Origin: Hemiscyllium ocellatum
Taxonomy: Eukaryota
DNA length: 64,000 nucleotides
Direction: 5' to 3'
Assembly: GCF_020745735.1 (NCBI RefSeq)
Contig: NC_083401.1
Coordinates: 94,423,740 to 94,487,739 of the forward strand
In this document: in pieces, positions 5,706 to 63,172 of the stretch
How positions within the stretch are numbered: the stretch's first letter is position 1
How the letters are laid out: each line of letters starts with the position of its first letter
Translations under genes and position numbers: made by a program
Notes under the pieces: generated by a model
What the model saw: the letters and a program-made list of their open reading frames with translations, nothing else
Databases searched by the model: none
Told to the model about the DNA's origin: nothing

Positions 5706-8700
5706 GTTAGTGGTATCATTTATGTAACTTTCTGCTCAATATTTTGTTTAAGTTTAGATTATGTACAGTATAGATTGAAACGTGCTTGAATTTCAACTCT
5801 CTTTGTAGAGTGTGAAACAGACGTAACAAGTGTTAAAATTCAAGTAAGATTTTTCACTACTTTGACTGCTATATGGCAATTTTAAGATTACTCTTTCTCA
5901 GAAGCTTGACTCATTTCATTGCCCTATATTATCATTATGATGTCAATATAATTTTAAATGCAACCTTACTGAACCACATGTTACAGTAAAACCTGTTAGA
6001 TACCAAGGTGATGCTCCCTAAATTGAAAGCTAAATTGTATGGGGTCCTTCAAGTCCCTCAACAGTATTTGGGCCACTGTTATCCTGGGCTCTCTCCTCAG
6101 CCTGAACAGACTGAAATCTGCAATATTGGGAACCTCCACAGGAGGCTGAGATGGACCATCCAGTTAGCATTTCTGACTGAAGACGGATGTCAATGCTTTA
6201 GCCATATCTTTTTGCACTAAGGCGCTTGGGTCTCCAATCATTAAGGATTGAGGCATTGTGGAGCTCCTCCTCCAGTTGATTGAGTTTGATTTTTCATCCC
6301 CATTGATGGCTGAATGTGACAGGACTGCAGAGTTTAGACTGAATATCACTCTATGTCCACCTCTGATAGTAAAAACGAGGACTGCAGAAGCTGGAAACCA
6401 GAGTCTAGATTAGAGTAGTGCTGGAAAAGCACAGCAGGTCAGGCAGCATCTGAGGAGTCCACCTCTGTTGATCTGGTGTTAAATGAAATAGCCAGGAAGA
6501 GTACTGGCAGGGCCTGAAGCATTATCTGTATGATTATGTGAGTATGACTGTCTCAGGCTTCTACTTGACTAGTCTGAGAGACAGCTCTTCCAATTTTAGC
6601 ATAAGCTCCCAAACTTTAGTAAGAGGTGTTTGTAGGGTCAATAGTGTTGAGTTAGCCATTGCTGTTTGCAATACCTGGGTCAATGCTCGGTGCTCCATCT
6701 GGTTTCATTCCTTTCTCAGATAGCACAGTGGTTTAATGCAACTGTCAGCTTGTTCGACTATTTTAGAGAGCATTGAAGAGTCAATCATGTTGCTGTGGAT
6801 CTGGAGTCACATGTAGGTCAAACCAGGTAAGGACACAGATTTCCTTCCCTCAAGAATATTTGTAAACAGGTAGGTTTTTACAACAATGGACAATGGTTCA
6901 TAGTCCCCATTTGACGAAATTTTAATTCTAGATTTATTAATTGGATTCAAATTTCATCATCAGCTGTGTGGGACTTGAACTCAATTGTCCAGCCCATTAG
7001 CCTGGGCCTCTGGAGCACTAATCCAATACTAGTAACATCACCACTCGATGCTAAAATAAACCAAAGTTAAAATTCACACAACACCAAGTTATAGTCCAAT
7101 AGGTTTAATTGGAAGCACACTAGCTTGCGGAGCAACGCTCCTTCATCAGGTGGTTGTGGAGGACACAATTGTAAGGCACTGAATTTATAGCAAAAATTTA
7201 CAGTGTGATGTAACTGAAATTATACATTGAAAAATACCTTGATTGTCTGTTGAGTCTTTCGTCTGTTCAAATACTATAATAGTTTCACTTCTTTCATGTG
7301 TAAATCACGAAATCTTTTTTTAAAAGTTGCATTCTCAGGTTAACTGTAACAATTTGTGTTAGCTAGACAATGTGTCGAAGGTGTTAGCCCCGAGTTCTCT
7401 GTCTATGCCATGATGTTTAGACTGATTCTAATCTAAAAAGTGAGATAACAGAGTTTTACATAAATTCATGCAGTTTTTGAACAAAGCACAATGTAACCCT
7501 GCAAGTACAAATTCACCCCAAAAATATATGTGTGCATGTGGGTCTTTGTGTCTGTCTGTGTGTGCGTCCGTCTGATTGGGGGTTGTGTATGTGTGAGAGA
7601 GTGTATATGTGAGTGTGTAGTGAATGTCTTAAGTCTCTGAGAGGATGCCTGTGTGAGTGTGGGAGTGTGTGTGTCTGTAAAGGTGTGTGTGTGTGTCTGT
7701 GTGCGTGTCTGTGTGTATGTGTGTGTATAGGAGTGTGTGTGTGTGTGAGTCTGTGTGTGTGTGTGTCTGTGTGTGTCTGTGTGTGTGTATTGTGCAATGG
7801 TGGTCATCTGTAATGTGACATGAACCCTAGGTCCCGGTTCAGGCCCTCCTTATGGGTATGGAGCCTCTGCTAGGCCACTGCTGCCTGTCCCAAAGTCTGC
7901 CTTGGAGGATGGTCACCCGAAGGTCTGAGGTTGAAAGTCCTGTACCGCTGAAGTGTTCCCCAACTGGGAGTCATGATTTGGAGATGCCGGTGTTGGACTG
8001 GGGTGTACACAGTTAAAAATCTCACAACACCAGGTTATAGCCCAACAGGTTTAATTGGAAGCACACTAGCTTTCGGAATCACCTGATGAAGGAGTGTCGC
8101 TCCGAAAGCTAGAGTGTTTTCAATTAAACTTGTTGGACTATAACCTGGTGTTGAGTGATTTTTAACCAACTGGGAGGGAACATTCCTGTCTGTTGATTGT
8201 TGTGCGGTGCTCATTATCTATTGCCATAGCCTTTGCTCGGTTTCCCCAATGTACCATGCCTCAGGGCATCCTTGCCTGCAACGTATAAGATAGACAATAT
8301 TGGCTGAGTCACCACGTACATGGTAGGAGGTGTCCCCACGTGTAATGGTGGTGTCCATGTCCACACTCTGACCTGTCTTGAAGCGCCTACTGTGACAGGG
8401 TTGTATGGAGTTGTCCTGAAAGCCGGGCAGCTTGCCGGATGTTGTGTGATTTTTAACTTTGTACACTCCAGTCCAACACCGGCATCTCCAAATCAAAATA
8501 AACCAATGCATCATAAAATCTGCAGTTGTTAGTTCATCCTGAGTAAGTGTTTTGAGATACAGCAACTTGATGGAGACAACAAACTGTGAATCTAGCAATC
8601 CTGTGTCCTCAGTGCAGCTCTCTTCTGTGGTGAAAACTGGACAACATAGGCTAGTGAGATCATTATGTCGAACAACTTTCTCCTTTGCTGTCTCAGACAT

Positions 8701-11700
8701 ATACTCAAAATCTCATGGGACTGAAATTCCAGACAGCATGAACTTAAATCATATTATAGCTTTCTGAGGGTTTAAATTCAGTTTACTTTTATTCACCCAT
8801 GAGTTGTGGACAACGCTGACCAGGCGAGTTGTAAAAGATATGAAAAGCTGTTTGCTTTTTAAAGATTCATTTGTGGGATATTGGCGTCACTGGCTGACCA
8901 GCATCTATCACCTTTCCCCTTCGAGAAGGTGGTAGTGAGCTGCCTTCTTGAACTGCTGCAGTCCATGTGCTGTAGGCTGACTCACAATGCTGTTAGGGAG
9001 GCAATTCCAGGATTTTGATGGAGGTACAGGAAAGGAACAATGATATATTTCTAAATCAGGATGATGAATGTCTTGGAGGGTGCTCCCATGTATCTGCTGC
9101 CCTTGTCCTTCTAGATGGAAATGATCTTGGTTTGGAAGGTGCTGTCTAAGAATCTTTGGGGAATTTCTGCAATGCATCTTGTTGATATTACGCACTGCTG
9201 TTACTAAATGTCAGTGGTGGAGGGAGTAGATGTTTGTGGGTGTGGTGTCAATCAAGCAATTTGCTTTGTCTTGGATGGTATCAAGCTTCTTGAATGTTAT
9301 TAGCGATGCATCTATCCAGGCAAGTTATCATAAAATCCGATCCTGTTCACTACTAAGCTTAGGGAAAAGCTGCATTCTTACTCAGTTTGAACAATGTATG
9401 ACTCCAATCTCACACCAATATGATTGACTTTTCCTTAACCTAGAAAGTCATTCAGTTGCATTAAAACTGCTGCACCGGTACTAGCAAAGGAAGGGAATTG
9501 TTATCCTTGCCAGCAAGATCCTCCACCAGGGAAAAAAAGAACAAAAATGAAGACTGGCAAATTAAAATTGTTTGTATATTATTAGTGGCAAGTGGACTGT
9601 GTATTTTCTACACAGCTTGAAACGTTGTCTCTCATGTATCAAATCTAATGACAGGGAGACAAAATGACAAAATCAGGTTGTGTCATTACTTGAAGATGAA
9701 GGGAGCAATTTCAGGGGGAATAATCAGAGGGAGCTGGCCTCAGTGAGACTCTCAACCCCTTCTTACCACATCATTGATTAAATTCTGGGCACTCATCTCG
9801 ATCTGCCACCAACTAAGGTCCTTAAGTGGTTAATTACCAGCCATTAGAGGCGTCAACTTATCACCTCTCTAATTACCTGTCTCTCTGATGAGCAGGAAAG
9901 GTTGCTACCTGGCAACTATGAAACTAGAGCAACCTGTTTGCTGAACTGAGAGGAAGTGGTGGAACAGTTGGGGTCGGGGGATAATCTCTAAAAGCCAACT
10001 GCTGCTCTTGCCTCTAAAACATCTCCCTGAAACACCCAGCTGTTGGCAGGAGTTTGAAACTTCTAGCTGTTGGACCCCTTGAGGAGTAGACTTTGGCAGG
10101 CATTTTCTTAGGACCCAGAAGTTGCTGTCTTCATGCCTTAATTGGCGAGCAGCTTCTGGTGACCTTGGATGCCAGTCTCAAGGTTTGACATCGGTTGAGA
10201 ATATTGATACTTTAAATCAATCTGTTCAAACAGATACATATCTGGGGCATGTGGGACTTGAACCTGAACCTCTGGCCCAGAAGTATGGACACTATCACTG
10301 TGACACAAGAACCTTATAGGTTGAGAGACTTACTTATAGTTTATTTTCCCTTCCCACGTGATCAACAGTGCCCTCCAGTGCATTTCTTCCATTTCCTGCA
10401 CCTCTGCCCTTGAAACTCACCCAACAAGGATAGAACACCCACACACCCCCAAACCACCTCCCCCACCCCCACCCCCTGTCCTCACCTTCTACCCTACTAA
10501 TCTCCAGACACAGCACATTATTGTCTGCCATTTCTGCCACCTACAATCAGACCCCATTGCCAGATATATTTCCTTCCCCACTTCTATTGGAATTCTGCAG
10601 AAACCATTCCCTCGTTAGGTCCACGCCATCCACCAACCCACCCTCCACTCTTTCTAAAGCACCTTCTCTTGCTACCGTGAGAGGTGTAAAACCTGCACCC
10701 ACACCTCCCTCCTCACCTCCATCCAAGGCCCCAATGGCCTACTTGCAGAATGTTTCAAGGAACACCTCTGGAGTAATCACACCAAACAGCCCCACTGCCC
10801 TTTGGCTGAACATTTTAACTCCCCTTCCCACTCTGCCAAGGGCATGCGAGTCCTAGGCTTCCTCCTCCACCAAATCCAAGCCACATGAAGCCTGGAGGAA
10901 GAATGCCTCATCTTCAGCGTTGTGACCCTCCAACCACAGGGCATCAACATTGATTTTACCAGTTTCCTCATCTTCCCTCACCCCACCTTAATCCAGATCC
11001 AACCCTCCAACTCGGCACCACTATCCTGAGCTGTCCCACCTGCTCATCTTTCTCTCCACCTATCCGCTCCACCCTCCCTTCCGACCTGCATCTACCTATT
11101 ACCTTTGCAGTTACCTTACCCCCAGCTCAACGCCTATCCTCCTATTTATCTCTCTGCCCCATTTAACCCCCACCCCTCAACATTCCTGATAAAGGGCGTA
11201 TACTTGAAATGTTGATTCTCCTGCTGCTTAGATGCTGCCTGTTCCGATATGCTTTTCCAACAGCTCACTTTTTATCTCTTAATTAACTGATTGGTGTGGG
11301 CAATGGGGATGATATGTTAGTCTCACCTAACATGTGTGCTCCCATATTTTAAGCAAAAAGGGAAAATTATGACCTATAAATCTTAACCAGGTCCCATTTA
11401 TTCCATGAAGGTATTGCTTTAATATGCTAACACCACTGCTCACATGCATTTAGATGAATTGTATTTTCTGGATGCTTTAAGAACACACTGGGTCATCTTT
11501 TCTCTAAATAGACATTGGTGTTTACACATGCACTCTACTGAGGCTGCTTTCCTTGACCTAGAATGCCACTTTTCTGACTCTCCAGCATTCTGAGTTCATC
11601 CTTATCCTCGAATTAGGCATTCTCACTGTCTTCAGAACTGCATTGGTAAAATGACATCTGCAGTACTGCATTCAGTTTTGCATTCCTAACCTGAGGAAAG

Positions 11701-50700: not shown

Positions 50701-53700
50701 CCTAATTAAATCCTCTTTGAGCCTCCAGAATCACTGGTGAAAGCAGAATATTCTGAAACATAGAAAATAGGAAATTGCCATTTGTCCCTTTGAGCCTCCT
50801 CTGTTGCTCACTGTGCATCAAGGCTGATCATTCAATTTAGTGCCCTGTTCCTGCTTAATCCCATGTCCTTTGTTCCCTCTCTGCCTAAGAACTATATGTA
50901 ACTCCTTCTTGAAAACATTCAATGTTTTCACCTCAGCTATTTTCCACAGAAAAGCATTCCACAGGCTCATTGCTCTCTGGATTAAGAAATTTCTCCTTAA
51001 CTTAGTCCTAAATGGTTTACCCCATATTCTTAAACTGGGTTCTGAACTCACCGGTCATTAGATGCATCCTTCCTGCACTTATACTGTCAAGTCTTGTTAG
51101 AAGTTTATAGGTTTGTATGAGACTTTCCCCTTTATTTTTCCAACCTCCAGTGAGTATAGTCCTAACAGATCCAGCCAGTCTGGTCATCCCAGAAATCATT
51201 CTGGAAAACTTTCATTGCATCCCCTCTATAGGTAGAACATTCTTCCTCAGGTAAGGAGATTGAAACTACACACAATATTCTAAGTATTGTCTTGCCAAGG
51301 CCTTATACAATTGCAGCAAGACATCCCTTTTCATATTTTCATTTGAATCCTCTCACTATAAAGGCCAACATATCTTCTTCACTGCCTGCATGTTTACTTT
51401 CAGCAACTGGTGTACAAGGACACCCAGGTCTCATTGCACCTATCCTATTCCCAATCAATTGCCAATCAGATAATAATCTGTCTTCCTATTTTGGTAACCA
51501 AAGTAGATAACCTCACATTATCCAAATTATACTTGATCGCCAATCTATTTGCATTCTCTGAATCCTTCTCACAGTTGACCCTCCTACCTAGCTTTGCATT
51601 TTCTTCAGGAGATATTCCATTTAGATCGCTCATCTAAATCATTAATACATTCTGTGAATAGTTGGGATCCAAATACTAAATCCCACGTACCCCACGAGTT
51701 ACTGGCTGCCTCTTGGAATATGGCCCATTTGCTATTCTTTATTTCCTGTCTGCTAATCAGTTCTCTAACCATGTCTACCTGCAATCTCGTGTGCTTTAAT
51801 TTCACACGCTAATTCCTCATGTGGGAGCTTATCAAAATATCCAGAATGAAGTTAGTGCTGTAATGGTTAGTGATTGTGTTCTCTAGAGCTTTCTGCGATG
51901 TCTTGGATAGATTCATTGGCATGAATCCTTCTTATTAATACTAGTCTTAGTTACTTATTCCAATTAGGGAAGGATGTCCACACAAAGTCTTAGACAGAAG
52001 ATCGACTCAGTCTTGTTAAATTGTGAAAATTGATTTCATTGTGCCTCATAGCTAGCTACAATACATCAAGGTAAATGATTGCCTCTGGTGAGACATCAGG
52101 TTCAAAAGATGAGTAAATATATATGAAGTATGTATTATATCTGATGAAGGCATACTTGAATAATTTACTCTGTTTTTCTCTCTCTCCACATAAGCTGCCA
52201 GACCGGCTGAGTTTCTCCAGTATTTTCTGTGTTGCTTCCAGACTTCCAACATCTGCAGTATTTAACTTTAATTCAAGTATATATAATTGTCACATTGATT
52301 TAGCTTTAGAAAAACTGGTAGTGGAGCACTGCAGCATTTTTTTAGCACTGCCCAGGATCAGTCCTCTTTATGCCTTGATGGGTAGAACTTTCTTGTGATA
52401 TCAACTGTCCCTTTCAGATACTAACTGATTTATACAACATCAGCCCATGAATTTAAACAGATTGAAATGCTGGATTTTTTGAAGTATTAAATGCTCAATG
52501 GTAAAAGGTTTAGTAAGTATAATTCTTCAGTTTGATACTGGGAATATATTAAAATTTATCTTCTGTCCAAATAAGAAGGGTGACATAGTTTAACTAATCC
52601 ACTAGATGGTGCTGAGGAGTCTCATGGCTGGAGAGCTGTTGAGAGTTTATTCCAAAAGGTTGATCTGCTGATCATTAAAGTGAAAGTCAAACCAATGCAA
52701 GATATCAATTTCTTGTGGAGATTCTCCTTCTGTTAAACAAGTGTAATGTTTTCTGTGGTATAATATTCTCTGGATGTGGGGATTATAGGATTTCTGTTGA
52801 CCAAGGTTGACCCTGTTGACTTTTTTAAATTCAGTCAAATTTAAAGTGTTTGAGCAGACCTGTGGCTTTTGGAATGCAATGATTTGTCCATCACCCATTT
52901 TGGATTGAAAAATGATCTCCTGGTTTAAATACCTGCAGCAACTTAAATAGCTGAATGTCATCGCTAAATTAAAAGCAACATCTCAAGTTCATTGCAGAAC
53001 ATTGGAGAGGCTGGTCCCTACGCAGAGTCTCAGGCCAGATTTTCAAACCAGTTACCAGGCATGAGATTGGAAGTGGACAGGCACATAATATCACAACATA
53101 AACCTCTGTATCAGTTTTTGCAGCTAAGCTGATCCTGATCATGTTTTCTTTTGTGATGAAAAGTGTAAGATTTCTTTTATTTTATCAAACATTAATAATT
53201 TAGAGCTTGAATTTTAAAATAGTGGCATATAGGGTGAGTTGCTTTTCTGAAGCATTTAAAAATGACTAGCTCAGACAGTCCTTCTGGAACAATGACCTAA
53301 TTTAGTATGTGTCAGAGCGCAGGATGCCTCTGGTGTGTTAATGAAAAATTGCTTGTACTGTGCTGGTTATGATAGGGAGTGCAAACATTGAAGCCATTCA
53401 CTTGTTTTTGGTTCAGGATAGTCAGTTATTGATTTTAATCAACATGGTGATTGAAAAACTAGAATAGTTTGGAGGAATCCTGATTGGGGTCAGAAACAAA
53501 TAACGTTTCTCCTAAAAAAAAAGGTTATAGGTCAGTTCAGGGAAAGCATAACTACCTCAGTAGAAAAGTTTAATTTGTGCAGCTTTGTAGACCATGAGTG
53601 ACCAGATCATACCATCAGCCCACAACTTGTCCCCCCGTGGACCTAGTCCCTGGCCCCACCCTACTGCTACCACCACCAGACTCGATTCACCATTCTTCAC

Positions 53701-56679
53701 TTGCTTCAGACCTGATCCACCTCCCACCAGGCATGTCTGAAAACCCCAGACTTAACACCCACCCACCAACCTCCCGAGGGGGTGTGAGGTGTGTCGAAAC
53801 AACTATAATCCTATTGAATGGTGCAACAGGTTAGATGGGCTGAATGGTCTACTGCTGTTTCCATTTTTTATGATCTTATTAACAGCTTTTATGTATTATG
53901 ATTAGAATTCTCTCATTTAAATTTGGTCAATATTTGTTGTATTAGGAATATAAAGTCTCCACCTGTTGAGACTCGAGTGTAGGGTTCAGATATACAACTT
54001 TAAAAGTGGATTCTGCTATAATCTGGATAATTTCTATCACAATGGCAAATGAATACAAGAATGCAGAAGTAGCCAGAGATAATTCCAGTACAATCAATGT
54101 AAGCAGAAAACTTGGGTTCTCGAGAGTATATTCTTAACATCTAAAAATGTTGTTCCTATATAACGAGCAATCTTCAATTATATTCTGTTACTGTTTATGT
54201 TTCTGGCAGGTCGCTTCCCATATTCACACCCTGGAATGCGGAAAAGCTGACGCTGCTTGCTTACAGCTCCTTACTACGATATTACAGGTTGAAAGTCAAT
54301 TTGCCACTTTCTCATAATATAAGGCAAAACTCTTTCTTAAAATCAGTGTGAATGTAACTTTGCAATTTATTGCAAGATGTTTATGGATAATTGCACAGGA
54401 ATGTCATTAGATAAATAAACAATTAAATGGAATTCCAAGGTTATTTCTTTTCTTCACCTTCCTTATTCGGGATATTATTCTTTCTTTCTGGGTTTTCCTG
54501 CATGATGTTAACTCTTCAATATCTCACTCATACAGTTATTCCTAGTGTGACATTGGATAGTGGGTAATACCATGTCGTTCCACTATCTTGACATCCATTT
54601 TGACATTCGATATTTTCCGACAAGGATCACTGGACTGCATGTGAATGCAGTTCTTCAATTTTACAGGTTAATTCTGAATATATTTCACTTGAAGTTGAGA
54701 TTGGGAAGGCTATATCAGGAAAGTTGAATTGGCATTGCCTGTTTTATATCATTATCAAGAGTCCCAATTGAGCCTCTGTGATTGGAATAGTAAATTGTTA
54801 TTTTGGCATTCAATTGAATCAAAGTGAATTCTAGTTTAAAAAAAAGGACCTGAATGTTCTTAATAGTCAATAATTATGATGATAAGATGAAGTGAATGAT
54901 ATCTCGCTTCTTTTGAATGTTATCGTTTATTATTCCTATTGACATTGTGATGCTGGGATGGGGCCTTGGACAGCACCACCTTTCTGGTTACCTCACCCAA
55001 ATGACTGTTCTTCAAGTGGGATCTAAACAGTGACTATCTTGGACAATATATATCCCACAATCAACATCACCAAACAGATGAACTGGTCATTATAACTTTG
55101 CTGTTTCTGGGACCTTGCTGTGTGCAAAATGATTGCTGTGTTTGCTTCATTACAACAGTGACTGCATTTCAAAAATACTCTGTTGGCTATAAATTCCTAA
55201 TGCAGGGCTTATGCCCAAAACGTTGATTATCCTCCTCATCAGATGCTGCCTAACCGGCTGTGCATTTCCAGCACCACACTTTTAACTCTTATTTCCAGCA
55301 TCTGCAGTCCTTACCTTCTCCTGGCAAATTGCTTCGGACCATGCTCAGGCTATAAAACACATCATGTGATTGGAAGTCTGAGTGTGAGAACTGAATGGAA
55401 GGACATCACTAAATCAATGCAATCAATCAGTTAGCACTTTTTTTGGGTGCAAATGGGGAATACATTGTTTAATGTCAGAAATAAGGGCAGGGGAAGTGTG
55501 CTTTCCTATCCTGCACACATTTCTTGTAGGATTGACAGATTGTGATACAAGATTAGAGTGATGCTGGAAAAGCACAGCAGGTCAGGCAGCATCTGAGGAG
55601 CAGGAAAATCAACATTTCAGGCAAAAGCCAATCAGGAAAGCATACTTCCCCTGCCCTTATTTCTGACATTAAACAATGTATTCCCCATTTGCACCCAAAA
55701 AAAGTGCTAACTGATTGATTGCATTGATTTAGTGATGTCCTTCCATTCAGTTCTCACACTCAGACTTCCAATCACATGATGTGTTTTATAGCCTGAGCAT
55801 GGTCCGAAGCAATTTGCCAGGAGAAGGTAAGGACTGCAGATGCTGGAAATAAGAGTTAAGAGTGTGGTGCTGGAAAAGCACAGCCGGTTAGGCAGCATCT
55901 GATGAGGAGGAGAATCAACGTTTTGGGCATAAGCCCTGCATTAGGAATTTATAGCCAACAGAGTATTTTTGCCTGAAACTTCGATTTTCCTGCTCCTCGG
56001 ATGCTGCCTGACCTGCCATGCTTTTCCAGCACCACTCTAATCCTGACTCTAATCTCCAGCATCTGTAGTACCCAATTCTGCCCAGATTGTGGTACAAATC
56101 TAGTCTAAAAATGCATAAGGTTACTGACAGATATCATTATATACACTATACCTATACATTATAGACAACCTTCCCCCCTTTTGTATCACATCTGATTCTG
56201 CTGATGTCAGGGTGAGATCAATAGACATCAATCTTTCAGCTGTAAAAATCGTTGGCTCAATATGAACATTTACAATAAAGGATAATATAACAGGGCAAAG
56301 CGACATTTTTACAGCAATTTTCTTTTTATTTTAAAGTTATTTATTATAAGTGTAGCACTCAATCTAAGTGGGGTAAGTAACTCTTTTGTATAACCTCTTG
56401 GAAGTAAACGAGTATGAAACAGTTAGCAATTTGACAATGTGATGTGCTAATGTACAAGTGTTACAATTGCTTTACATTGGGGTGATTTGTTTTCTCAGAA
56501 CTGCAGTTAGAGAGGTAACAGTCACCAGCAACAATTTCACTTGTAGACCATTTGAAAATTAGTCTTAAATCATTATGTCTGCACAGTCTGTGAAACAACT
56601 TTTCTGGTTCTTTCACAGATCAGGAACAGCAGTCATTCCAAAAAGTTCCAGGTCTTCTTTTATAGTCGTTGTCAAATCA
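5594..56679 (+). CDS. Partial multi-exon gene (8 internal coding exons, 242 codons): cyclic nucleotide-binding domain-containing protein, CNBD2-like; 5' and 3' ends outside window
   Basis: Exons 5594-5705, 15407-15481, 27046-27134, 31091-31253, 32478-32561, 34204-34268, 54210-54287 and 56619-56679 all have AG/GT boundaries. Phases match (0,0,2,0,0,2,2), total 727 nt, no stops. Translation: [245 protein letters not shown]-domain motifs (V-x-x-K-G, YFVLTG, G-x-x-FG, R-x-AT) and the start of a second CNB domain are colinear, from memory, with vertebrate CNBD2. Orthology versus paralogy is not established. Confidence 0.88.
6368..6456 (-). mobile_element. Single-arm PLE family A 3' end; ~13-bp TSD
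   Basis: GTCCACCTCTG(A/T)T duplicated at 6355-6367 and 6457-6469. Confidence 0.8.
7118..7152 (-). ncRNA. Hammerhead ribozyme (family C), core GAAA mutated to GCAA
   Basis: Reverse complement CAC-CTGATGA-A-GGAGC-GTT-GCTCC-GCAA-GCTA-GTG. Confidence 0.6.
7525..7790. repeat. Imperfect (TG)n microsatellite inside the family C PLE 3' UTR
   Basis: TG-rich tandem sequence. Confidence 0.9.
7971..8165. mobile_element. Hairpin mini-PLE (family C) nested in a copy of its own family; 11-bp TSD
   Basis: Inverted arms of the family C 3' end joined at ~8077; TSD CCAACTGGGAG at 7960-7970 and 8166-8176. Confidence 0.88.
8080..8114 (+). ncRNA. Minimal hammerhead ribozyme (family C)
   Basis: CAC-CTGATGA-A-GGAGT-GTC-GCTCC-GAAA-GC-TA-G(A/T)G; palindromic AGCT stem III. 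Confidence 0.75.
8860..9320 (-). mobile_element. CR1/L2-group LINE 3' end
   Basis: [12 protein letters not shown]...[14 protein letters not shown]; reverse complement of 49225-49620-type sequence. Confidence 0.7.
10335..11280 (+). mobile_element. Degraded Penelope-like element (family A) 3' fragment
   Basis: Similar to 664-1331 and 17600-18765; decayed hammerhead at ~11182-11218. Confidence 0.8.
11680..12020 (+). mobile_element. CR1 LINE 3' fragment
   Basis: Decayed [12 protein letters not shown] motif. Confidence 0.7.
12686..12921 (+). mobile_element. Solo LTR (236 bp) with 5-bp TSD
   Basis: TG...CA ends, GATATAA TATA-like box, AATAAA, TSD CCTAC at 12681-12685 and 12922-12926. Confidence 0.85.
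15407..15481 (+). CDS. CNBD2-like coding exon
   Basis: tttcactttattgcag acceptor, GTAACG donor; [25 protein letters not shown] (P-x-x-R-S/T-x-ED motif preceding CNB domains). Confidence 0.85.
15615..16135 (-). mobile_element. CR1 LINE 3' fragment
   Basis: Similar to 1862-2332. Confidence 0.85.
16151..16380 (+). mobile_element. Solo LTR, same family as 12686-12921
   Basis: TGTAGTGATTGTAA...GAGTTATTTCA; colinear similarity. Confidence 0.8.
18034..18069 (-). ncRNA. Minimal type I hammerhead ribozyme (mirror copy)
   Basis: Reverse complement ATTC-CTGATGA-A-GGGC-CTAT-GCCC-GAAA-CGTC-GAAT. Confidence 0.85.
18071..18106 (+). ncRNA. Minimal type I hammerhead ribozyme (PLE family A)
   Basis: ATTC-CTGATGA-A-GGGC-TTAT-GCCC-GAAA-CG-TC/GAAT. 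Intact core, stem I ATTC:GAAT, stem II GGGC:GCCC, palindromic ACGT stem III, predicted cut after C18102. Confidence 0.85.
20128..20167 (-). ncRNA. Hammerhead ribozyme, family B inverted arm
   Basis: Exact reverse complement of 21497-21536. Confidence 0.7.
21497..21536 (+). ncRNA. Hammerhead ribozyme, family B (stem III variant GAAAAGTT)
   Basis: GCACTGATGATGTCGCCTAGCCAGGGGACGAAAAGTTTGC. Confidence 0.7.
22230..23170 (-). mobile_element. Probable degraded L2-like LINE fragment
   Basis: Purine-rich + strand typical of antisense L2 endonuclease regions; no intact motif. Confidence 0.4.
24705..26490 (-). mobile_element. CR1 LINE RT/3' fragment
   Basis: [41 protein letters not shown]. Confidence 0.92.
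26051..26372 (+). mobile_element. HE1-type V-SINE, full length, nested in CR1
   Basis: GGTGGCCCAGTGGTTAGCAC A box, GGTTCAATACC B box, V-domain, (CTAAT)n tail. Confidence 0.92.
27046..27134 (+). CDS. CNBD2-like coding exon
   Basis: tttttttattgaag acceptor, GTAAGT donor; [29 protein letters not shown] (CNB N-terminal helices). Confidence 0.87.
27260..27465. mobile_element. Hairpin mini-PLE (family A); 16-bp TSD
   Basis: Inverted arms joined at ~27350; TSD CTATGGGTAAAAGAGC at 27244-27259 and 27466-27481. Confidence 0.92.
27318..27350 (-). ncRNA. Hammerhead core (family A), stem I truncated at hairpin junction
   Basis: Reverse complement C-CTGAAGA-A-GGGC-TCAT-GCCC-GAAA-CGTC-GATT. Confidence 0.65.
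27655..29420 (+). mobile_element. Degraded CR1 LINE
   Basis: [36 protein letters not shown] motifs. Confidence 0.88.
28738..28960. mobile_element. Older hairpin mini-PLE (family A) inserted in a CR1; 15-bp TSD
   Basis: Palindrome centre GAAT-G-ATTC at 28866. TSD TAAAGCTCTG(A/C)TCAG at 28723-28737 and 28961-28975. Confidence 0.88.
30040..30480 (+). mobile_element. Solo LTR of the same family, interrupted by a poly(A) retro-insertion
   Basis: CTGGCTGACAGATATAAACAG and GGTGACTTGGTGGTAGGATAC match the other copies. Confidence 0.7.
30151..30353 (+). mobile_element. Non-LTR (L1/Tx1-like) 3' UTR fragment with A-rich tail and ~15-bp TSD
   Basis: ATAAACAGAAGTGTC (30136-30150) versus ATAAATAGGAGTGTC (30354-30368); AATAAA and A-rich end. 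Confidence 0.65.
30620..30950 (+). mobile_element. HE1-type V-SINE (diverged)
   Basis: Same head, V-domain and tail. Confidence 0.85.
31091..31253 (+). CDS. CNBD2-like coding exon (CNB beta-barrel)
   Basis: ctctatttag acceptor, GTAAGA donor; [25 protein letters not shown]...EGDLFG. Confidence 0.92.
32478..32561 (+). CDS. CNBD2-like coding exon (phosphate-binding cassette)
   Basis: ttattttacag acceptor, GTGTGT donor; [28 protein letters not shown]. Confidence 0.92.
32823..33395 (-). mobile_element. CR1 LINE 3' fragment
   Basis: GTCATAGAGTCATAGAG tail; similar to 1862-2332. Confidence 0.85.
34204..34268 (+). CDS. CNBD2-like coding exon
   Basis: long polypyrimidine tract plus ctcag acceptor, GTAGTG donor; [21 protein letters not shown](R). 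Confidence 0.88.
34640..35000 (+). mobile_element. Second tRNA-derived SINE family sharing its 3' end with the adjacent LINE
   Basis: GGTTCAAATCC B box; 3' end GGGCAATAAATGCTGGCCTAGC...CCATGAATGAAT matches the LINE end at ~35660-35735; related minus copy ~6760-7045. Confidence 0.65.
35040..35740 (+). mobile_element. CR1/L2-group LINE 3' fragment
   Basis: Shared with 8860-9320(-), 19200-22150(+), 44430-44750(+) and 49225-49620(+). Confidence 0.7.
35776..35962. mobile_element. Hairpin mini-PLE (family A); 13-bp TSD
   Basis: Inverted arms joined at ~35860; TSD CCCAGGGATTGAA at 35763-35775 and 35963-35975. Confidence 0.92.
36572..37238 (+). mobile_element. CR1 LINE 3' fragment (young)
   Basis: [25 protein letters not shown]; CTCTATGACTCTATGACT tail. 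Confidence 0.92.
37260..42100 (+). mobile_element. Highly decayed Ty3/Gypsy LTR retrotransposon (RT-RNase H-integrase, PPT and probable 3' LTR)
   Basis: [17 protein letters not shown] (~37450), MPFG (37664), [12 protein letters not shown] (YxDD region), [24 protein letters not shown] (~38200-38300), YFSKF...IVSNNGPQ (~40270-40400). Polypurine tract AGAAAGGGGGA precedes TG at 41824. Interrupted by CR1. Confidence 0.8.
38460..39630 (+). mobile_element. Degraded CR1 LINE nested in the Gypsy element
   Basis: [25 protein letters not shown] motifs. Confidence 0.85.
42165..43010 (+). mobile_element. Degraded CR1 LINE
   Basis: Decayed RT and TTCCTATG tail. Confidence 0.75.
44760..44980 (-). mobile_element. 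HE1-type V-SINE (partial)
   Basis: Similarity to 26051-26372. Confidence 0.8.
45752..46035 (-). mobile_element. HE1-type V-SINE
   Basis: Similarity to 26051-26372. Confidence 0.82.
47090..47740 (+). mobile_element. CR1 LINE 3' fragment with a short antisense CR1 tail inserted (~47283-47374)
   Basis: [13 protein letters not shown] motif; TATGATTCTATGA tail. Confidence 0.8.
47758..48866 (+). repeat. ~100-bp diverged direct repeat pair (47758-47860 / 48766-48866)
   Basis: GTTGTCAGC(C/A)ATTAGCAG...TTTGATCATTTAGATGTGTTTTTT...CATATTAAAACAGAAAG occurs twice. Confidence 0.9.
49225..49620 (+). mobile_element. CR1/L2-group LINE 3' end
   Basis: Same family as 8860-9320. Confidence 0.7.
49915..50235 (-). 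mobile_element. HE1-type V-SINE, full length, young (CpGs intact)
   Basis: GGGCGGCACGGTGGCACAGTGGTTAGCACTGCTGCC head on minus strand; (CTAAT)n tail. Confidence 0.93.
50755..51840 (-). mobile_element. Degraded CR1 LINE
   Basis: [33 protein letters not shown] motifs. Confidence 0.8.
52138..52270 (+). mobile_element. Degraded PLE-type 3' end
   Basis: CTGATGAAGG start and CCAACATCTGCAGTATTT tail resembling family A ends. Confidence 0.55.
54210..54287 (+). CDS. CNBD2-like coding exon (start of second CNB domain)
   Basis: tttctggcag acceptor, GTTGAA donor; [25 protein letters not shown]; follows a ~20-kb intron in matching phase 2. Confidence 0.88.
54950..55360 (+). mobile_element. Probable Deu-domain SINE (SacSINE1/AmnSINE1-like) remnant, split by the PLE end at 55193-55323
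   Basis: GCTGTTTCTGGGACCTTGCTGTGTGCAAA...CATTACAACAGTGACT resembles the DeuSINE 3' region from memory. Confidence 0.5.
55193..55323 (+). mobile_element. Single-arm PLE family A 3' end beginning at the hammerhead
   Basis: Starts ATTCCTAATGCAGGGCTTATGCCCAAAACGTTGATT and ends CAGCATCTGCAGTCCTTACCTTCTCC. Confidence 0.8.
55551..56082. mobile_element. Hairpin mini-PLE (family A) containing a 338-bp inverted copy of adjacent host DNA; 15-bp TSD
   Basis: Arms 55551-55629 and ~55967-56082. The segment 55634-55971 is the reverse complement of 55170-55507. TSD CAGATTGTG(A/G)TACAA at 55536-55550 and 56083-56097. Confidence 0.9.
56619..56679 (+). CDS. CNBD2-like coding exon (last in window)
   Basis: ttctttcacag acceptor, GTAAGT donor; (R)[20 protein letters not shown]. 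Confidence 0.87.
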
Positions 56680-57714
56680 GTAAGTACATTCTTTTTCACA
56701 ACCTTGCCACATCATTTCTTATAGTCTGCAATGTCACAACAAGCAAAAGGACTAGGTTTGATATTCAAACTGTTTAGATATCTATCTATTTTATCTATAA
56801 AACAAAATATTTCTTTGCTTTCTTTAAGAACTTTTTCATTGAATTACATATTCTCACTAGAACTTGAGTTTATTTCAGTCCAAGCAATTAAACGCTTGCA
56901 TTAAAAGTTTAAAGTGAGGCACTTGTAAGCTGAATCAGTTCATAATGGATACTTGGAAAGATGGATGCCAAAAGGTGACAATGAATGTCAATCCTTTGAT
57001 ACTATATCATTTTAAAAAATACCTTTAGCTTAATCAAATTTTTAATAGGTAATCACATTGCAAATTGAGAGAAATGCGTGAGCCCTAATATTTGACAGCC
57101 TTAACCTGAGTCAGCCCAAAAGGTTGTATTATCCTGTAGCACAGATTCACTTGTGTTTGACTTGTGTGGGACTGTTCTGAATGAATTTTGCAATGAAAGA
57201 ACGTCCTTCTAATCTGAGTAGTTTTCAGGTACAAGAAAATATTTTCCAAAGAGCCTGGCCCAATAGAACAATTGACCGAGGAACACAGATCCAGTGAGGC
57301 AGCCACTCTTGAAAGTGTATAGCTCATCGTTTAACAGGGTTATTTTGGGAGAGGAAAAGAAGTTTGCAAACACTGCTGCCTTTACTGTTGATGGTTTACT
57401 AAGTCCTGAAGACATTGCCTGGAGAATGAAGGATAGCTTTAACTGAGGCATTCATAGAAAATCAGTGTGAGACCTGAATGGAGAGACAACACTCAGTTAA
57501 CACAATCAATCAGTCAGCTCACATCTGGCTGCAAATGGGGAATACATTGGATTGTGTCACAAATAAGTGCAGGGGAAGTATCCTTTCTGACCCTGTGTAC
57601 ATCTATGGAGTCATAGAGCCATATTTCTTGTAGGGATGATGGATTGTGGCACAAACCTAGTCTGAAAACAAATGATGTCACTGGGAGATACCATTTCACA
57701 TGTTAGATATGATA

Positions 57715-58030
57715 TATTTGATTTGATTTGATTTATTATTGTCACATGTATCAAGAGACAGTGAAAAGTATTGTATTGTGTGCTAACCGGATAAATCGTA
57801 CCTTACATTAAAAGAATGCAGAATATAGTGTTACAGCTACAGAGAAGGTGCTGAAAGAGATCAACTCTAATATATCAGAGGTCCACTCATAAGTCTGATA
57901 ACAGTGGGGAGGAAACTGTTGTTTAATCTGTTGGTACTTGTGTTCAAACTTTTACATCATGCTAGGTGGAATAGGGTGAAAGAGGGTAGAACTGGGGTAA
58001 GAGGGGCCTTTGATTATAGGCAGCTTTTCT
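57715..58030 (-). mobile_element. LINE 3' end with (CAAAT)n tail (probably Rex1 group)
   Basis: GATTTGATTTGATTTATTATTGTCACATG; related pieces at ~16625-16760(+) and ~40975-41050(-). Confidence 0.6.
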
Positions 58031-59029
58031 CTTTTTGCACTGCTTTCATTCTACATAAATTATGTAGTCCTTTTTTTTAAAGTCAGAAGTATCAAGTAAG
58101 GAATAACAAACAGCTCTCAGCAGAGGTGGTGCTGTGCTGTTCAAGAATTCTTCAGTGTGGAGTAGCAGCTTGCAGAGCACACCTCTGTGACCTACAAGTG
58201 CTTTGAATCAGATGGTGTCCTGTTGATGTTCCTGTTCTGAAATCTCACCTAAACAAACACCTGTTTGGTGTGCTCTGTCTTGCAGCAGATGTGCGATGTA
58301 TCTTTAAGGAGCATGCTCATGATGTAATTACCATGTCATTGCACGTGACCGAATGGGATCAAGGTCTCAGCCTCCATTTTAGTGGGTCCTCTTGCAACAC
58401 AAGAGAGAAGTGTGTGTTGCATTATGTTTGAATTGCTTAGCTTGAGCCCAGACACATGTGTGCCTGTGATTATAATGTGCATCTGTAAACATTAGGAGTT
58501 ATAATAAAAGCACATTGAATTATTCAGTACTACAATACCAGGGTGGTGATGGTCAGTGCTGTGTGGCCACTACAGTCAGTCTGGTGAGTCATGGGAACAC
58601 ATGGAGCAGTACAGACATCAGTCAGGGCTCTAGTCATTCATCATTCTGGTGAAGCTGCTCAAGAGGTTGGGCCATGGTCATCTAGGCAAGGGCTCTATAT
58701 GCCAAAAGTCTGTGAGGAACGGGATTATCAGGAGGCCGGTGCTGTGAGAGGGAAGTTGATGGTGGGAAGTGGAGGCAGAATCCTGGGATGCAGAAGGTAT
58801 TACAATTGTGAAGGGAAGCAACTTACTCCATAACTGAAGGGTAACGATGGAACATGGAAGGGTAAAGGGGGTGTAGTCAACAGAGAGCAGCCCCTTGGAT
58901 ACTTGGCTGAGCGTCAGAGGAATGTACAGTGAGCTACAGGATGTTACCCTCATATGCCTGAGACTGGGGAGTGGGAATGGTGGGCAGATGTGGACTCAGA
59001 TATAGACAAGTTGGGTGAGAAGGTGAAGA

Positions 59030-59722
59030 CTTGGTGTGGAAGGCTTCCGACCCATAGACTGCAATCAGTGAAGATGGAAAACTCCTCCTCAATAACCCCA
59101 ACATTGGAGCTCCCCAAGGATGCATTCTCAGCCCCCTACTGTACTCCCTGGACACTAATGACTGTGTAGCCAAATTTTGAACAAATGCTATTTACAAGTT
59201 TGCTGATGACATGACTGTGGTAGGACACATACCAAACAACAATGAGTCAGAATATGGAAAGGCGATAGAGGGCTTGGTGTTGTACTGCAGTAGTAACAGC
59301 CTCTCACTCAATGTCAGCAAAACTAAAGAACTGAACATTGACTTCAGAAAGAAAGAGGAGAACACGCCCCCATCTACCTCATGGAGTGGAGGTAGAGAGC
59401 TTCAAGTTCCTAGGAGTGATGACAATCAACAACCTGTCCTGGACTTCCCACATAGATGCGACAGTCAAGGTGGCACAACAGCGCCTCCTCCTCCTCCTCA
59501 GGCATCTCAGGAAATTTGGCATTCACCAATTTCACAGCTGCACCACAGAGAACATACTATCCTGGTGCATAATTGCCTGGTACAGCAACTGCTCTGCCCA
59601 AGACTGTAAGAAACTACAAAATGCTGTGTGCTGAGCTCAGGTCATCACGAAGCCAACTTCCCATCCATGGACTCCATTTACACTTCTTGTTGCCATGGAA
59701 AGGCTGCCAATCCTGGTAATGC
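59030..59722 (+). mobile_element. Rex1/Babar-like LINE RT fragment
   Basis: GAPQGCILSPLLYSL.T.DC, KFADDMTVVG, LNVSKTKELNIDFRK, VESFKFLGV, ILSWCIIAWY. Confidence 0.85.
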
Positions 59723-59725
59723 TCT

Positions 59726-59961
59726 CCGACTGTGTGGAGTTTGCACATTCTCCCCATGTCTTCGAGGGTTTCCTCCAGGTGCTCCGTTTTCCTCCCACAG
59801 TCCAAAAATGTGCAGGTAGGTGAATTGGTCATGCTAAATTGCCCATAGTGTTAGGTGAAGGGGTAAATGTAGGGGAATGGGTCGGGTTGGGTGGCGGATC
59901 GGTGTGGACTTGTTGGGCTGAAGGGCCTGTTTCCACACTGAAAGTAATCTAATCTAATCTA
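59726..59961 (+). mobile_element. 5'-truncated HE1-type V-SINE
   Basis: V-domain through (CTAAT)n tail. Confidence 0.85.
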
Positions 59962-60818
59962 AACATTAGCTGACTGTGCGCAGTCCAACCCCTTGCACCA
60001 AACACTCGTCATCGCTTGAGAAAGGAGAATGACTAACCCCCTTGACTGGGGATGCGTTCAAAATATCAATGCCCCTGGAGAGTTGGAGCTGAGTTGTTGA
60101 ATTTACAGACGTCCATGAGTCACACATTGCCTCATCAGGGAGTGGCTGTTGCTGACTTTGCACCTCCGTCCATGGAACATTGTCTCAGGATAAGAATGCT
60201 TCAGTACATTCCAGGTACATTTTTGGCTACACAGTGACTTGTACGAACAGATGGTAGTCAGGGATGAATATATATTTACAAATGTAAGAAATTAATCAGA
60301 ATTTGGTGACACAGTGACACTTGCATGTACCCTCTAAACATTGTCTTCTTTCTGACTGTCCCACTATGTCTCAGTGCTGTCCCAGGTTCTGCGGGCAGGG
60401 TGAAGGGAGCCTGCCTGACAGTGCAGTCTGTTGGCCTTGGAGCTATGACTGGATAACTCCAGGGATATTGGTGCTTAGAAGGCATATGGTGTGTGTCCTT
60501 GCCAGAGACAAGTGAACTCTCTTGGCTTGGACTCTTGCAGAGATGAGAGTGATAAGCAGTTGAAGGCCTGGCTACCTCTGAACTGTCCTGAGAGGAGAGA
60601 TCTGAAGGGTGTGTATGTGGCTCCTTCTCTGGCTGGATCTGTACTGACATTGTCCTGTCTGCTTGTGAGTAAAGGGCACCTGGAGTGAGGTCAGGATTCC
60701 TTGTTCCCTGTCACCTTGTCGACATATCCAGCAGGTACTGAAATTGCTGGACTTGGCTCTCCATGGCAGTTGTCAATATGTTGTTGTGGTTCTGTTCGCC
60801 GAGCTGGAAGTTTTTGTT

Positions 60819-60858
60819 GCAAATGTTTCGTCCTCTGGCTAGGAGACATCATCAGTGC
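60819..60858 (-). ncRNA. Hammerhead ribozyme, family B inverted arm (point-mutated)
   Basis: Reverse complement GCACTGATGATGTCTCCTAGCCAGAGGACGAAACATTTGC. Confidence 0.7.
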
Positions 60859-61404
60859 TCTGGAGCCTCCTGCGACGCGCTTCTTTGATGTTTCTTCTGG
60901 TATTTATAGTGGTCTGTCCTTGCTGCCTCCGGGTGTCAGTTTCAGCTGTCCGCTGTAGTGGTTGGTATATTGGGTCCAGGTCGATGTGTTTGTTGATGGA
61001 GTTTGTGGATGAATGCCATGCCTCTAGGAATTCCCTGGCTGTTCTCTGTCTGGCTTGCCCTACGATAGTAGTGTTTTCCCAGTCGAATTTTTGTTGCTTG
61101 TTGTCTGAGTGTGTGGCTACTAGGGATAGCTGGTCGTGTCGTTTCGTGGCTAGTTGATGTTCATGTATGCGGATTGTTAGCTGTCTTCCTGTTTGTCCTA
61201 TATAGTGTTTTGTGCAGTCCTTGCATGGTATTTTGTAAACTACATTAGTTTTGCTCATGTTGGGTATCGGCTCCTTTGTTCTAGTGAGTTGTTGTCTGAG
61301 CGTGGCTGTTGGTTTGTGTGCCGTTATGAGTCCTAAGGGTCGCAGTAATCTGGCTGTCAGTTCTGAAACGCTCCTGATGTATGGTAGTGTGGCTAGTCCT
61401 TTTG

Positions 61405-62560
61405 ATCTCATTCGACGTGACGGCACTGTTCACTTCGATTGACAAAACCCTAGCCAGAGAAACAATAGCCAACCTACTGGACATACAGAACAGAAAACAG
61501 GAGGCGGAACCTATCAACAAAGATGGCATACTTAAACTACTGGACTTGTGCCTCACTACACACTTTACATTCAACAATCAGATATATGAACAAATCAACG
61601 GAACACCCATGGGATCACCAATCTCGGGACTCATAGCAGAGGCAGTTATGCAAAGGTTAGAACAAACAGCCCTACCACAAATTCAACCCAAACTCGGAGT
61701 CAGATATGTCGATGACACGTTTGTAATCATCAAAAACACGGAAATAGAAAAAACACACCGGATCATCAACGCCACACTCACAGGAATCCGATTCACAAGA
61801 GAAGAAGTAAAGGATAGCCAACTCCCATTCCTAGACGTGATAGTACAGAGAACACCGAACGGAGAATTCACCACAAGGGTACACAGGAAAACAACACACA
61901 CAGACCAAGTCCTAAACTATGAAAGTAACCACCCCAACACACACAAACGAAGCTGCATCAGGACACTATTCAAAAGAGCCACAACACACTGCAGTACACC
62001 AGAACTGCGAAAAGAGGAAGAGGAACACCTATACAAGGTATTCGCCAAAAACGGATACCCGCGCAACTTTATCAACAGATGCCTAAGAGATAGACCACAG
62101 AACGAAGAAATGCCACAACCAAAAGGACTAGCCAAACTACCATACATCATGAGCGTTTCAGAACTGACAGCCAGATTACTGCGACCCTTAGGACTCATAA
62201 CGGCACACAAACCAACAGCCACGCTCAGACAACAACTCACTAGAACAAAGGAGCCGATACCCAACATGAGCAAAACTAATGTAGTTTACAAAATACCATG
62301 CAAGGACTGCACAAAACACTATATAGGACAAACAGGAAGACAGCTAACAATCGCATACATGAACATCAACTAGCCACGAAACGACACGACCAGCTATCCC
62401 TAGTAGCCACACACTCAGACAACAAGCAACATAAATTTGACTGGGAAAACACTACTATCATAGGGCAAGCCAGACAGAGAACAGCCAGGGAATTCCTAGA
62501 GGCATGGCATTCATCCACAAACGCCATCAACAAATACATCGACCTGGACCCAATATACCA
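61405..62560 (+). pseudogene. Truncated Penelope RT + GIY-YIG endonuclease ORF with a 1-nt frameshift near 62351
   Basis: Motifs [75 protein letters not shown] lacks one C relative to ACAATCCGCATAC in the other three arms; the frame continues RIHEH...REFLEAWHS. Confidence 0.92.
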
Positions 62561-62664
62561 ACCACTACAACGGACAGCTGAAACTGACACCCGGAAGCGG
62601 CAAGGACAGACCACTATAAATACCAGAAGAAACATCAAAGAAGCGCTTCGCAGGAGGCTCCAGA

Positions 62665-62704
62665 GCACTGATGATGTCTCCTAGCCAGGGGACGAAACGT
62701 TTGC
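62665..62704 (+). ncRNA. Minimal type I hammerhead ribozyme (Poseidon-type family B)
   Basis: GCA-CTGATGA-T-GTCTCCT-AGCC-AGGGGAC-GAAA-CG-TT/TGC. Stem I GCA:TGC, 7-bp stem II, palindromic ACGT, predicted cut after T62701. Confidence 0.85.
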
Positions 62705-63172
62705 AACAAAAACTTCCAGCTCGGCAAACAGAACCACAACAATGAGCACCCGAGCTACAAATCTTCGCACAAACGTTGTCAATATGTCCATGGAGACAGC
62801 TAAACACTCACATACCTGAGGTAGCAGGGAATCAATGCCTTTGCTACAGTGCTGCAGCCACTGTGTCAGGATGCCCAGTGCTCCCAGGATACCTGCCTGC
62901 TGCCCCTGAGTCTGCTTGTGCTTTTTGTAATGCAGCCCCTGATTACCAACCTCTTCATAGAGCTTCTTTCTGGACCAGCTTTCTGAGATGTGCCAGTGGA
63001 ATGCTCACCAGAAGGTGCTCCTAACTTGAATTCAGCTATTGATATTGTACATCTCTGCAGGGCCAGTCCTAGCCTTTGCCAGCAAGACTAAGATCCTCTC
63101 CTTATAGTGGATGAGGAGCAGAATATTGGGCACCCAAGTACCTGTTCTGGCTCTATTTATGGCCATTTAGTC

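Follow-up and report, generated by a model that had tools for sequence, protein, structure and literature searches.

In this work we analysed a 64,000-nt stretch of the genome of the shark Hemiscyllium ocellatum (called the window hereafter), in which nine insertions consist of two inverted copies of the 3' end of an element, with a terminal tail on only one of the two copies. The elements form three families (A, B and C) that, judged by their sequence motifs, are Penelope-like elements (PLEs). It is likely that the nine insertions are products of PLE integration in which both nicked target strands primed reverse transcription, using two start sites on the element RNA. An earlier reading of the DNA letters (the sequence-only reading) had proposed such priming at two fixed RNA positions, a proposal that is supported by the geometry of the insertions, by their fixed end points and by the published biochemistry of a lizard enzyme. 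All nine insertions were read directly in the sequence; they are listed here with their target-site duplications (TSDs), each being named in brackets by the first nucleotide inside its TSDs.

7053-8506, minus strand, family C insertion (7065): TSD AAAATAAACCAA at 7053-7064 and 8495-8506; tail-less arm 7065-8434, sense minus, ending at 7065, ~1.37 kb, with a nuclease open reading frame (ORF) remnant, a (CA)n tract and the hammerhead region; tailed arm 8435-8494, sense plus, 60 nt only (24 nt plus the 36-nt tail).
7960-8176, family C mini fold-back (7971), nested in the nuclease ORF of the 7053-8506 copy: TSD CCAACTGGGAG at 7960-7970 and 8166-8176; tailed arm 7971 to ~8078, sense minus; tail-less arm ~8079-8165, sense plus, with an intact minimal hammerhead at 8083-8111.
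17923-18179, family A mini fold-back (17938): 15-bp TSD at 17923-17937 and 18165-18179; arms 98% identical, tailed 17938-18070, sense minus, and tail-less 18071-18164, sense plus; one hammerhead per strand, 18038-18065 (minus) and 18075-18102 (plus).
20079-21626, family B insertion, Penelope/Poseidon type by its motifs (20095): 16-bp TSD at 20079-20094 and 21611-21626; tail-less arm 20095-20881, sense minus, 787 nt; tailed arm 20882-21610, sense plus, 688 nt plus a 41-nt tail; arms 98% identical, both encoding a putative GIY-YIG nuclease.
27244-27481, family A mini fold-back (27260): 16-bp TSD at 27244-27259 and 27466-27481; tail-less arm 27260 to ~27350, sense minus; tailed arm ~27349-27465, sense plus; 5 nt of microhomology (GCTCT) between tail-less end and TSD; hammerhead 27322-27349 (minus).
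28723-28975, older family A mini fold-back (28738): TSD matching at 14/15 bases, 28723-28737 and 28961-28975; arms 81% identical, tailed 28738-28866, sense minus, and tail-less 28867-28960, sense plus.
35763-35975, family A mini fold-back (35776): 13-bp TSD at 35763-35775 and 35963-35975; arms 100% identical over 62 nt, tail-less 35776 to ~35861, sense minus, and tailed 35862-35962, sense plus.
55536-56097, family A fold-back (55551): TSD matching at 14/15 bases, 55536-55550 and 56083-56097; arms 90% identical, tail-less 55551-55634, sense minus, and tailed 55967-56082, sense plus.
60769-62787, family B insertion (60782): 13-bp TSD at 60769-60781 and 62775-62787; tail-less arm 60782-61404, sense minus, 623 nt; tailed arm 61405-62774, sense plus, 1337 nt plus a 33-nt tail, with a reverse transcriptase (RT, YVDD) and GIY-YIG ORF; hammerhead 62668-62701.

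In every insertion the paired arms are inverted copies of the 3'-terminal region of the element, and both outer ends are the element 3' end. The TSDs claimed for all nine in the sequence-only reading are exact, 11–16 bp long and directly abutting the insert in seven; those of the 28738 and 55551 insertions agree at 14 of 15 bases. A flank match of at least 8 nt has a chance probability of 7e-5 (random position pairs, with spacings as in the insertions). The terminal tail is present on exactly one arm in the nine cases, the other arm being without the last 33–42 nt. Raw tails measure 36, 42, 38, 41 and 38 nt in the 7065, 7971, 17938, 20095 and 27260 insertions, and 34, 34, 40 and 33 nt in the 28738, 35776, 55551 and 60782 insertions; tail length depends on the assignment of the bases shared with the TSD and is 33–42 nt after these are subtracted, within about 3 nt of the 31–41 nt reported previously. 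The fold-back structure with one tail-less arm was thus recovered at every position where it had been claimed. When the whole window was scanned for inverted repeats that lie close together and are at least 40 nt long, the Penelope pairs returned were precisely these nine insertions, the remaining matches being one later flank duplication, one pair resembling a miniature inverted-repeat transposable element (MITE) and cross-matches between copies; the earlier list is therefore complete for the window and not selected.

Reading the two arms of the 7065-8494 insertion as unrelated (heterologous) sequences is wrong: the minus strand of the interior encodes the nuclease, and the arms are ~1.37 kb and 60 nt long. 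The long arm contains, in its 3' untranslated part, a degenerate (TG)n/(CA)n microsatellite of ~270 bp (7520-7790).

The tail-less ends occupy nearly fixed positions. Allowing for microhomology, the five family A ends are all compatible with one base (after ...TTTTCAGC), while the two family B ends are 2–4 nt apart within an AC-rich run and the two family C ends 1–4 nt apart, a spread of 0–4 nt that bears out the statement that the short arm stops at nearly the same base in each family. The tailed ends vary by ~3 nt. Microhomology of the tail-less end to the TSD, scored as base(s) adjoining the tail-less end that are identical to the first base(s) of the tail, amounts to 3, 1, 2, 2, 5, 1, 1, 0 and 1 nt for the insertions in coordinate order. 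It is thus at least 1 nt in eight of the nine, with a chance of 0.25 for each (P = 1e-4 for at least 8/9), in line with the 1–5 nt first noticed.

Evidence from the rest of the genome came from contigs of two samples of H. ocellatum and of two related species, aligned to the 55551 insertion (~1e5 pieces per run). The strongest peaks of loose contig ends, with ~800–1300 contigs per run in three species, fall a little inward of the tail-less end point, at the mirror positions 55558 and 56035; past these peaks the consensus shows ~10 nt of family sequence and then AT-rich sequence foreign to the family. As the loose ends peak at mirror positions, tail-less end points are concentrated genome-wide and not scattered. 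The uniform genome-wide scatter that the sequence-only reading had named as contrary evidence was therefore not seen, the family A contigs peaking in three species. For family B, the tail end at 21612 coincides with a loose-end peak that has an AT-rich flank consensus among contigs aligned genome-wide; the tail-less end point of this family was not among the loose ends listed.

No cleavage-site motif is shared across the nine sites. In one family B insertion, both strands were cut at ...ATT. In the family C targets the six bases outside the nicks are twofold symmetric, with GGAACA on both strands for the 7971 insertion and TGCATC versus AGCATC for the 7065 insertion, as would be expected of a dimeric nuclease, in two cases only; no twofold target symmetry is present in families A and B. 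The flanks of the 20095 insertion (19871-20083 and 21646-21858) are another repeat, with thousand-fold contig depth in three species; since both flanks are repeat-derived, this family B copy inserted into an older interspersed repeat.

A stem of 7–10 bp is predicted in all three families, in which sequence upstream of the tail-less end pairs with the middle of the tail. The internal site is in the loop, 8–13 nt before the 3' strand of the stem, and the tail is composed of half of the loop, the stem strand and then 16–22 nt more. Support from shuffled sequences is moderate (A 0–10/300, B about 22/300, C 11/300).

The two arms of an insertion are most often unequal. The tail-less arm is the longer one, reaching further 5', in six of the nine insertions, by more than 1 kb in 7065, by 99 nt in 20095 and by 8–20 nt in 7971, 27260, 35776 and 55551; the arms are equal within 1 nt in 17938 and 28738, and in a single insertion, 60782, the tailed arm is longer, by 714 nt. 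These lengths bear on snap-back self-priming, in which one cDNA would fold at a palindrome, for example the hammerhead stem, and copy itself into the second arm. Self-priming has been argued for inverted PLE repeats (Arkhipova et al. 2013, PMC3846280), the 17938 and 28738 minis are near-perfect palindromes with a common centre, and the internal junctions cluster near the hammerhead region. However, a self-copy is unable to add a tail of 33–42 nt that is missing from its template arm, nor does it account for the longer tail-less arms or for the 714 extra nt of the tailed arm in 60782, and the junctions are not mirror points. Two separately templated cDNAs are therefore required, and snap-back appears very improbable to us. 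The common palindrome centre of the 17938 and 28738 minis (18070 and 28866) lies 1 nt upstream of ATTCCTGATGA, and contigs aligned genome-wide lose similarity just upstream of CATTCCTGATGA (loose ends at 55967/55970), which suggests a preferred 5' end, or a strong template stop, at the 5' edge of the hammerhead.

The arms of an insertion nevertheless come from a common source. In family B, five informative sites group the four arms by insertion and none conflicts; in family A, three of the five pairs consist of arms that are each other's nearest neighbours; and partner arms are 95–100% identical in the young minis, separate insertions being about 80–92% alike. This pattern is unlike the copying of a diverged master palindrome, and it argues against the short fold-backs being non-autonomous palindromic elements that would transpose as a whole, the tail-less end then being an RNA 5' end. 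Such units would be in keeping with the great abundance of the family A minis (about 1e5 contig pieces per run) and with the common centre of 17938 and 28738. Yet 27260, 35776, 7971 and 55551, as well as each family B and C insertion, have different internal junctions, the 5' arm of such an RNA would be antisense and hold no ribozyme to cut at the end point, and the coding-length B and C insertions obey the same rule as the minis, so that we find this explanation unlikely.

Three insertions have empty-site equivalents, which indicate insertion in a single event; this evidence is paralogous or comes from a host motif. The 17938 mini splits the GIY-YIG coding region of a long A-type copy, of which the paralogue at 1070-1323 is contiguous and has the TSD once; the flanks of 55551 are a repeat, of which the other copy (57464-57695) is also contiguous with a single TSD; and the conserved LPVG-EHF motif of the host nuclease becomes contiguous again once the 7971 mini and one TSD copy are taken out. 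One related species has a contig whose alignment to the young family B insertion at 20095 starts precisely with the right TSD, leaving 108 letters upstream of it unaligned; among the rows listed there was no matching joint, and the flanks of this insertion are themselves repeated.

The fold-backs could conceivably be two separate insertions, or a DNA palindrome made by replication or repair, independently of integration. A DNA-level inverted duplication does exist in the middle of the 55551 insertion, where 55634-55971 is an inverted copy of the upstream flank 55170-55507 (338 bp, 334/338 or 99% identical, including an older family A copy). The duplicated segment ends 43 nt before the insertion point, and its copy sits exactly between the two arms with ~5 nt of microhomology at each junction. 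This duplication (99%) is much younger than the arms (90%) and appears to be absent from the two related species: contigs of these species are continuous over ~55290-55575, a stretch that leads from the duplicated segment past its end into the arm, while H. ocellatum contigs break at the variant positions between the two flank copies. Contig behaviour thus makes it most likely that the inverted flank copy is a later, lineage-specific rearrangement in an older palindrome. The left junction of the 55551 insertion is present in both related species and the right junction in one, and the insertion therefore predates the split. In addition, one TSD brackets each pair of arms without target DNA between them, the same asymmetry recurs in 9/9 insertions of three families, and source variants are common to both arms, all of which make an origin independent of integration hardly credible. 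The MITE-like pair recovered in the inverted-repeat scan (63173-63216 and 63344-63387; 44-nt inverted repeats, 93% complementary, 127 nt apart) is unrelated to the Penelope families.

A profile search of the window also detected six family A copies that are not fold-backs.

666-1334, minus strand: single copy, tailed at 666; hammerhead 761-788; nuclease ORF remnant 990-1334.
6371-6457, minus strand: single copy of 87 nt, 5'-truncated, tailed at 6371, with TCCACCTCTG on both flanks.
10300-11279, plus strand: long A-type copy with a CYRERCKTC linker, a nuclease remnant, a tailed 3' end at 11279 and an internal deletion.
17300-18761, plus strand: long A-type copy, host of the 17938 mini, which interrupts its nuclease ORF; tailed at 18761.
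52184-52268, plus strand: weak single copy extending into the tail (positions 18-100 of the 103-position profile).
55193-55322, plus strand: single copy, tailed at 55322; it and its flank were later duplicated into the centre of the 55551 insertion.

All six are tailed. The probability that nine tail-less ends fall exactly one per pair, given nine pairs and six single copies, is 3.9e-4 [512/C(24,9)], or 0.007 for family A alone. An exact search for TSDs of the single copies found none of at least 9 nt; these copies are old. The 666-1334 copy ends against a CR1/L2-like long interspersed nuclear element (LINE); LINE remnants with a CR1/L2-like RT (e.g. ...SQHGFVKGR...) occupy ~1400-3200 on the minus strand, with an endonuclease-like ORF at 2546-2935.

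This census bears on the possibility that the element RNA has two 3'-end isoforms, distal and internal, and that reverse transcription always starts from the RNA end. An RNA end and an internal start leave the same sequence, and the internal point, lying in a predicted loop, might be a cleavage site. Two isoforms drawn independently are however expected to yield tailed–tailed and tail-less–tail-less pairs as well as tail-less single copies, none of which occurs among the nine pairs and six singles (P = 4e-4). Moreover, extra 3' RNA sequence left the main product of the lizard Poseidon enzyme unchanged, so that its initiation is internal (PMC11167929). We consider the isoform explanation quite unlikely.

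The assignment of the three families rests on motifs and on homology searches. There are no cross-family matches of nucleotide sequence (blastn), and in this respect the description of the families as unrelated stands; it does not hold for the encoded nucleases, which are mutually homologous (A–B, 30% over 70 residues, E = 2e-9). In family B, the ORF at 61381-62373 contains YVDD and matches Pfam RVT_1 with 31 bits (cut-off 29.6, E = 2.6e-7); an RT coding portion is present in the window for family B only, and none for A or C. Downstream of this RT comes a GIY-YIG core, ending ...HEH, with the pair of internal cysteines that PLE nucleases typically have. GIY-YIG/CCHH motifs can be read in B (...HEH), A (...REH) and C, the only Pfam match returned being GIY-YIG below its cut-off (15.7 and 13.2 bits versus 22.6). 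The GIY-YIG motif and C-terminal nuclease region of family A are in the long copies 666-1334, 10300-11279 and 17300-18761, and the family C nuclease is on the minus strand inside the 7065-8494 insertion. The closest database proteins are uncharacterised and come from orectolobiform sharks.

A CX2-5CxxC linker is found in Neptune and Nematis and is absent from Penelope/Poseidon (PMC8557442). The family A linker is CYRERCKTC (CX4CxxC) in 10300-11279 and a degenerate CHCKKYKTC in 17300-18761, which supports a Neptune-type assignment, with the same motif present in the Nematis clade. Family B has the CCHH motif and no CX2-5CxxC in more than 100 residues upstream of VVYKIPC, which supports a Penelope/Poseidon type. 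The linker of family C is a degenerate motif only, suggestive of a family that is probably of Neptune type, represented by a degenerate copy. Of the Neptune- and Poseidon-type families announced in the sequence-only reading, A and B are thus upheld by the linker, and C stays at the level of a suggestion.

A minimal type-I hammerhead has been described in PLE terminal repeats (Cervera & de la Pena 2014, PMC4209133). Using the descriptor of that study (CUGANGA, an extra nucleotide, a G10.1–C11.1 helix II, GAAA and a palindromic 15.2/16.2 pair), we found six intact motifs in the window, at least one per family, versus none in 200 shuffles. The Rfam hammerhead models gave no match at gathering thresholds, nor at E up to 10 with one example per family, as expected because these variants have no helix III. 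Searches at E up to 10 returned below-threshold microRNA hairpin families only, which match the palindromes. Plant microRNA look-alikes were recorded at 18035-18105 and 8019-8160 (MIR6136, 55.6 bits, and MIR860, 51.4 bits; below threshold, with a low E-value); these hairpin matches of the palindromic minis are look-alikes in structure only and are likely to give rise to false microRNA calls. The only Rfam match at gathering thresholds is a U6 spliceosomal RNA-like sequence at 4368-4470 on the plus strand (62 bits over the full model length, with several core mismatches), which may be a gene or a retro-pseudogene.

Our favoured reading of the fold-backs is the following. The GIY-YIG nuclease would nick both target strands, 11–16 bp apart, and each exposed 3'-OH would prime reverse transcription on the element RNA. 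On one strand synthesis would start at the distal site, the 3' end of the unit, and give the tailed arm; on the other it would start at the internal site 33–42 nt upstream, in the loop of an 8–10 bp stem, and give the tail-less arm, this internal start usually sharing 1–5 nt with the target end. The two cDNAs would meet head to head with an overlap of 0–2 nt, each being completed on the other, and filling of the staggered gap would produce the TSD. Used alone, the distal site would give an ordinary 5'-truncated tailed copy. By analogy, the shark enzymes would act like the lizard Poseidon enzyme; the joining of the two cDNAs is likewise something that we infer.

The following points weigh against this reading. 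The stem-loop comes from thermodynamic prediction and shuffles (P of about 0.00–0.08 per family) and not from covariation. The arms of 28738 (81%) and 55551 (90%) are more diverged than their TSDs, and different template RNAs are therefore possible in these two insertions, the comparison of TSD and arm divergence as a test of arm identity at insertion being itself biased by the fact that TSDs are defined by their match. Finally, the lizard enzyme in vitro shows no start-site difference between the strands, which leaves the strict pairing of one tailed with one tail-less arm unexplained by the published data. A tentative explanation, which we hold to be possible but doubtful, is that one RNA serves each integration and that each of its two start sites can be used once. 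If the internal loop site were primed first, the freed 35-nt 3' tail could be primed by the other strand, yielding a one-tailed fold-back; if the distal site were primed first, the cDNA would run over the internal site and yield a simple tailed copy. A single RNA would explain the mixed composition of 9/9 pairs, the tails of 6/6 single copies and the observation that in eight of the nine insertions the tailed arm does not extend beyond its tail-less partner on the 5' side.

The canonical PLE insertion reportedly consists of a pseudo-long terminal repeat (pseudo-LTR) or of an inverted 5'-truncated copy, with a variable TSD and a tail of 30–40 bp at one end (Evgen'ev & Arkhipova 2005; Arkhipova et al. 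2013; Craig et al. 2021). The shark insertions resemble it in their inverted arm, their TSD, the tail of 31–42 nt on one arm and the hammerheads in the terminal repeat. They differ from it in that the window has no head-to-tail partial tandem (pseudo-LTR) of A, B or C, only inverted pairs and single copies, and in that most insertions are ~200-bp minis made of two 3' ends only. The inverted-only arrangement is a regular PLE variant in the literature, and the missing pseudo-LTRs therefore do not exclude membership of the PLEs. In one published account, an inverted repeat is flanked by a TSD and a 31-bp tail is optional on one inverted repeat (Arkhipova 2013, PMC3846280). In Adineta vaga the inverted copy is 37 bp shorter than the full repeat (PMC3846280), the same asymmetry as in the shark, while rotifer TSDs are 8–10 bp compared with 11–16 bp here. 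A tail of 30–40 bp, often at one end only, is known from every PLE clade, Naiad and Chlamys among them, and has been attributed to the nuclease (Craig 2021, PMC8557442). The one-sided tail, the inverted arm and the TSD were therefore already described (PMC3846280, PMC8557442).

The mechanism with two starts and both strands, right in outline, is also already published. Purified Poseidon PAc of Anolis carolinensis cleaves and extends both target strands in vitro (Frangieh et al. 2024, PMC11167929). It uses two adjacent internal start sites in an AC-rich stem-loop, the genomic tail being the sequence between them, and both sites are used on both strands with no homology to the target (PMC11167929). 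On the favoured reading, the shark insertions would have in common with PAc both strands as primers, two internal starts and a tail that is the interval between them. They also share a predicted AC-rich stem-loop at the internal start, the family B tail-less ends lying in the AC-rich loop CAGAACCACAACAACGAG, and AT-rich targets, as the genome-wide flank consensus at the family B tail end is AT-rich. In contrast with PAc, the shark fold-backs pair one start of each kind while single copies use the distal start only, and the shark internal start shows 1–5 nt of microhomology where none was found in vitro.

In twin priming of L1, the second nicked strand is said to prime reverse transcription and to leave an inverted segment within one TSD. 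The site on the same RNA at which the second L1 primer anneals is internal and variable, and the segments are adjacent parts of the element; L1 is not known to have a fixed second start site or a tail. The shark insertions are similar in having an inverted segment inside one TSD, and differ in that their arms are two copies of the same 3' end. In target-primed reverse transcription of R2 and other non-LTR elements, only the bottom strand primes on the RNA, synthesis begins from the RNA 3' end, and the nuclease is of the restriction-enzyme-like (REL) or else of the apurinic/apyrimidinic (AP) type. The nick-primed cDNA at the target (proposed for the shark), the 5'-truncated copies and the junction microhomology are common to these elements and to the shark PLEs, whose putative nuclease is of the GIY-YIG type, not REL or AP.

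This work adds to these studies a census of the window, significant microhomology, unequal arms, three checks of the empty-site type and a stem-loop in three families. Three points are absent from the published accounts (PMC3846280, PMC8557442, PMC11167929): the strict coupling of start sites, the microhomology at the internal site and the usually greater length of the tail-less arm. Abundant palindromic minis are a source of mis-annotation, through sub-threshold microRNA hairpin matches, and of assembly breaks. In conclusion, the window is a clean natural record of PLE integration that agrees with the only biochemical PLE study, and it extends the picture of two starts and both strands from one lizard Poseidon to Neptune-type and Poseidon-type families of a shark. 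The start-site coupling, if true genome-wide, constrains how the two nicks and the RNA are placed with respect to the dimeric enzyme.

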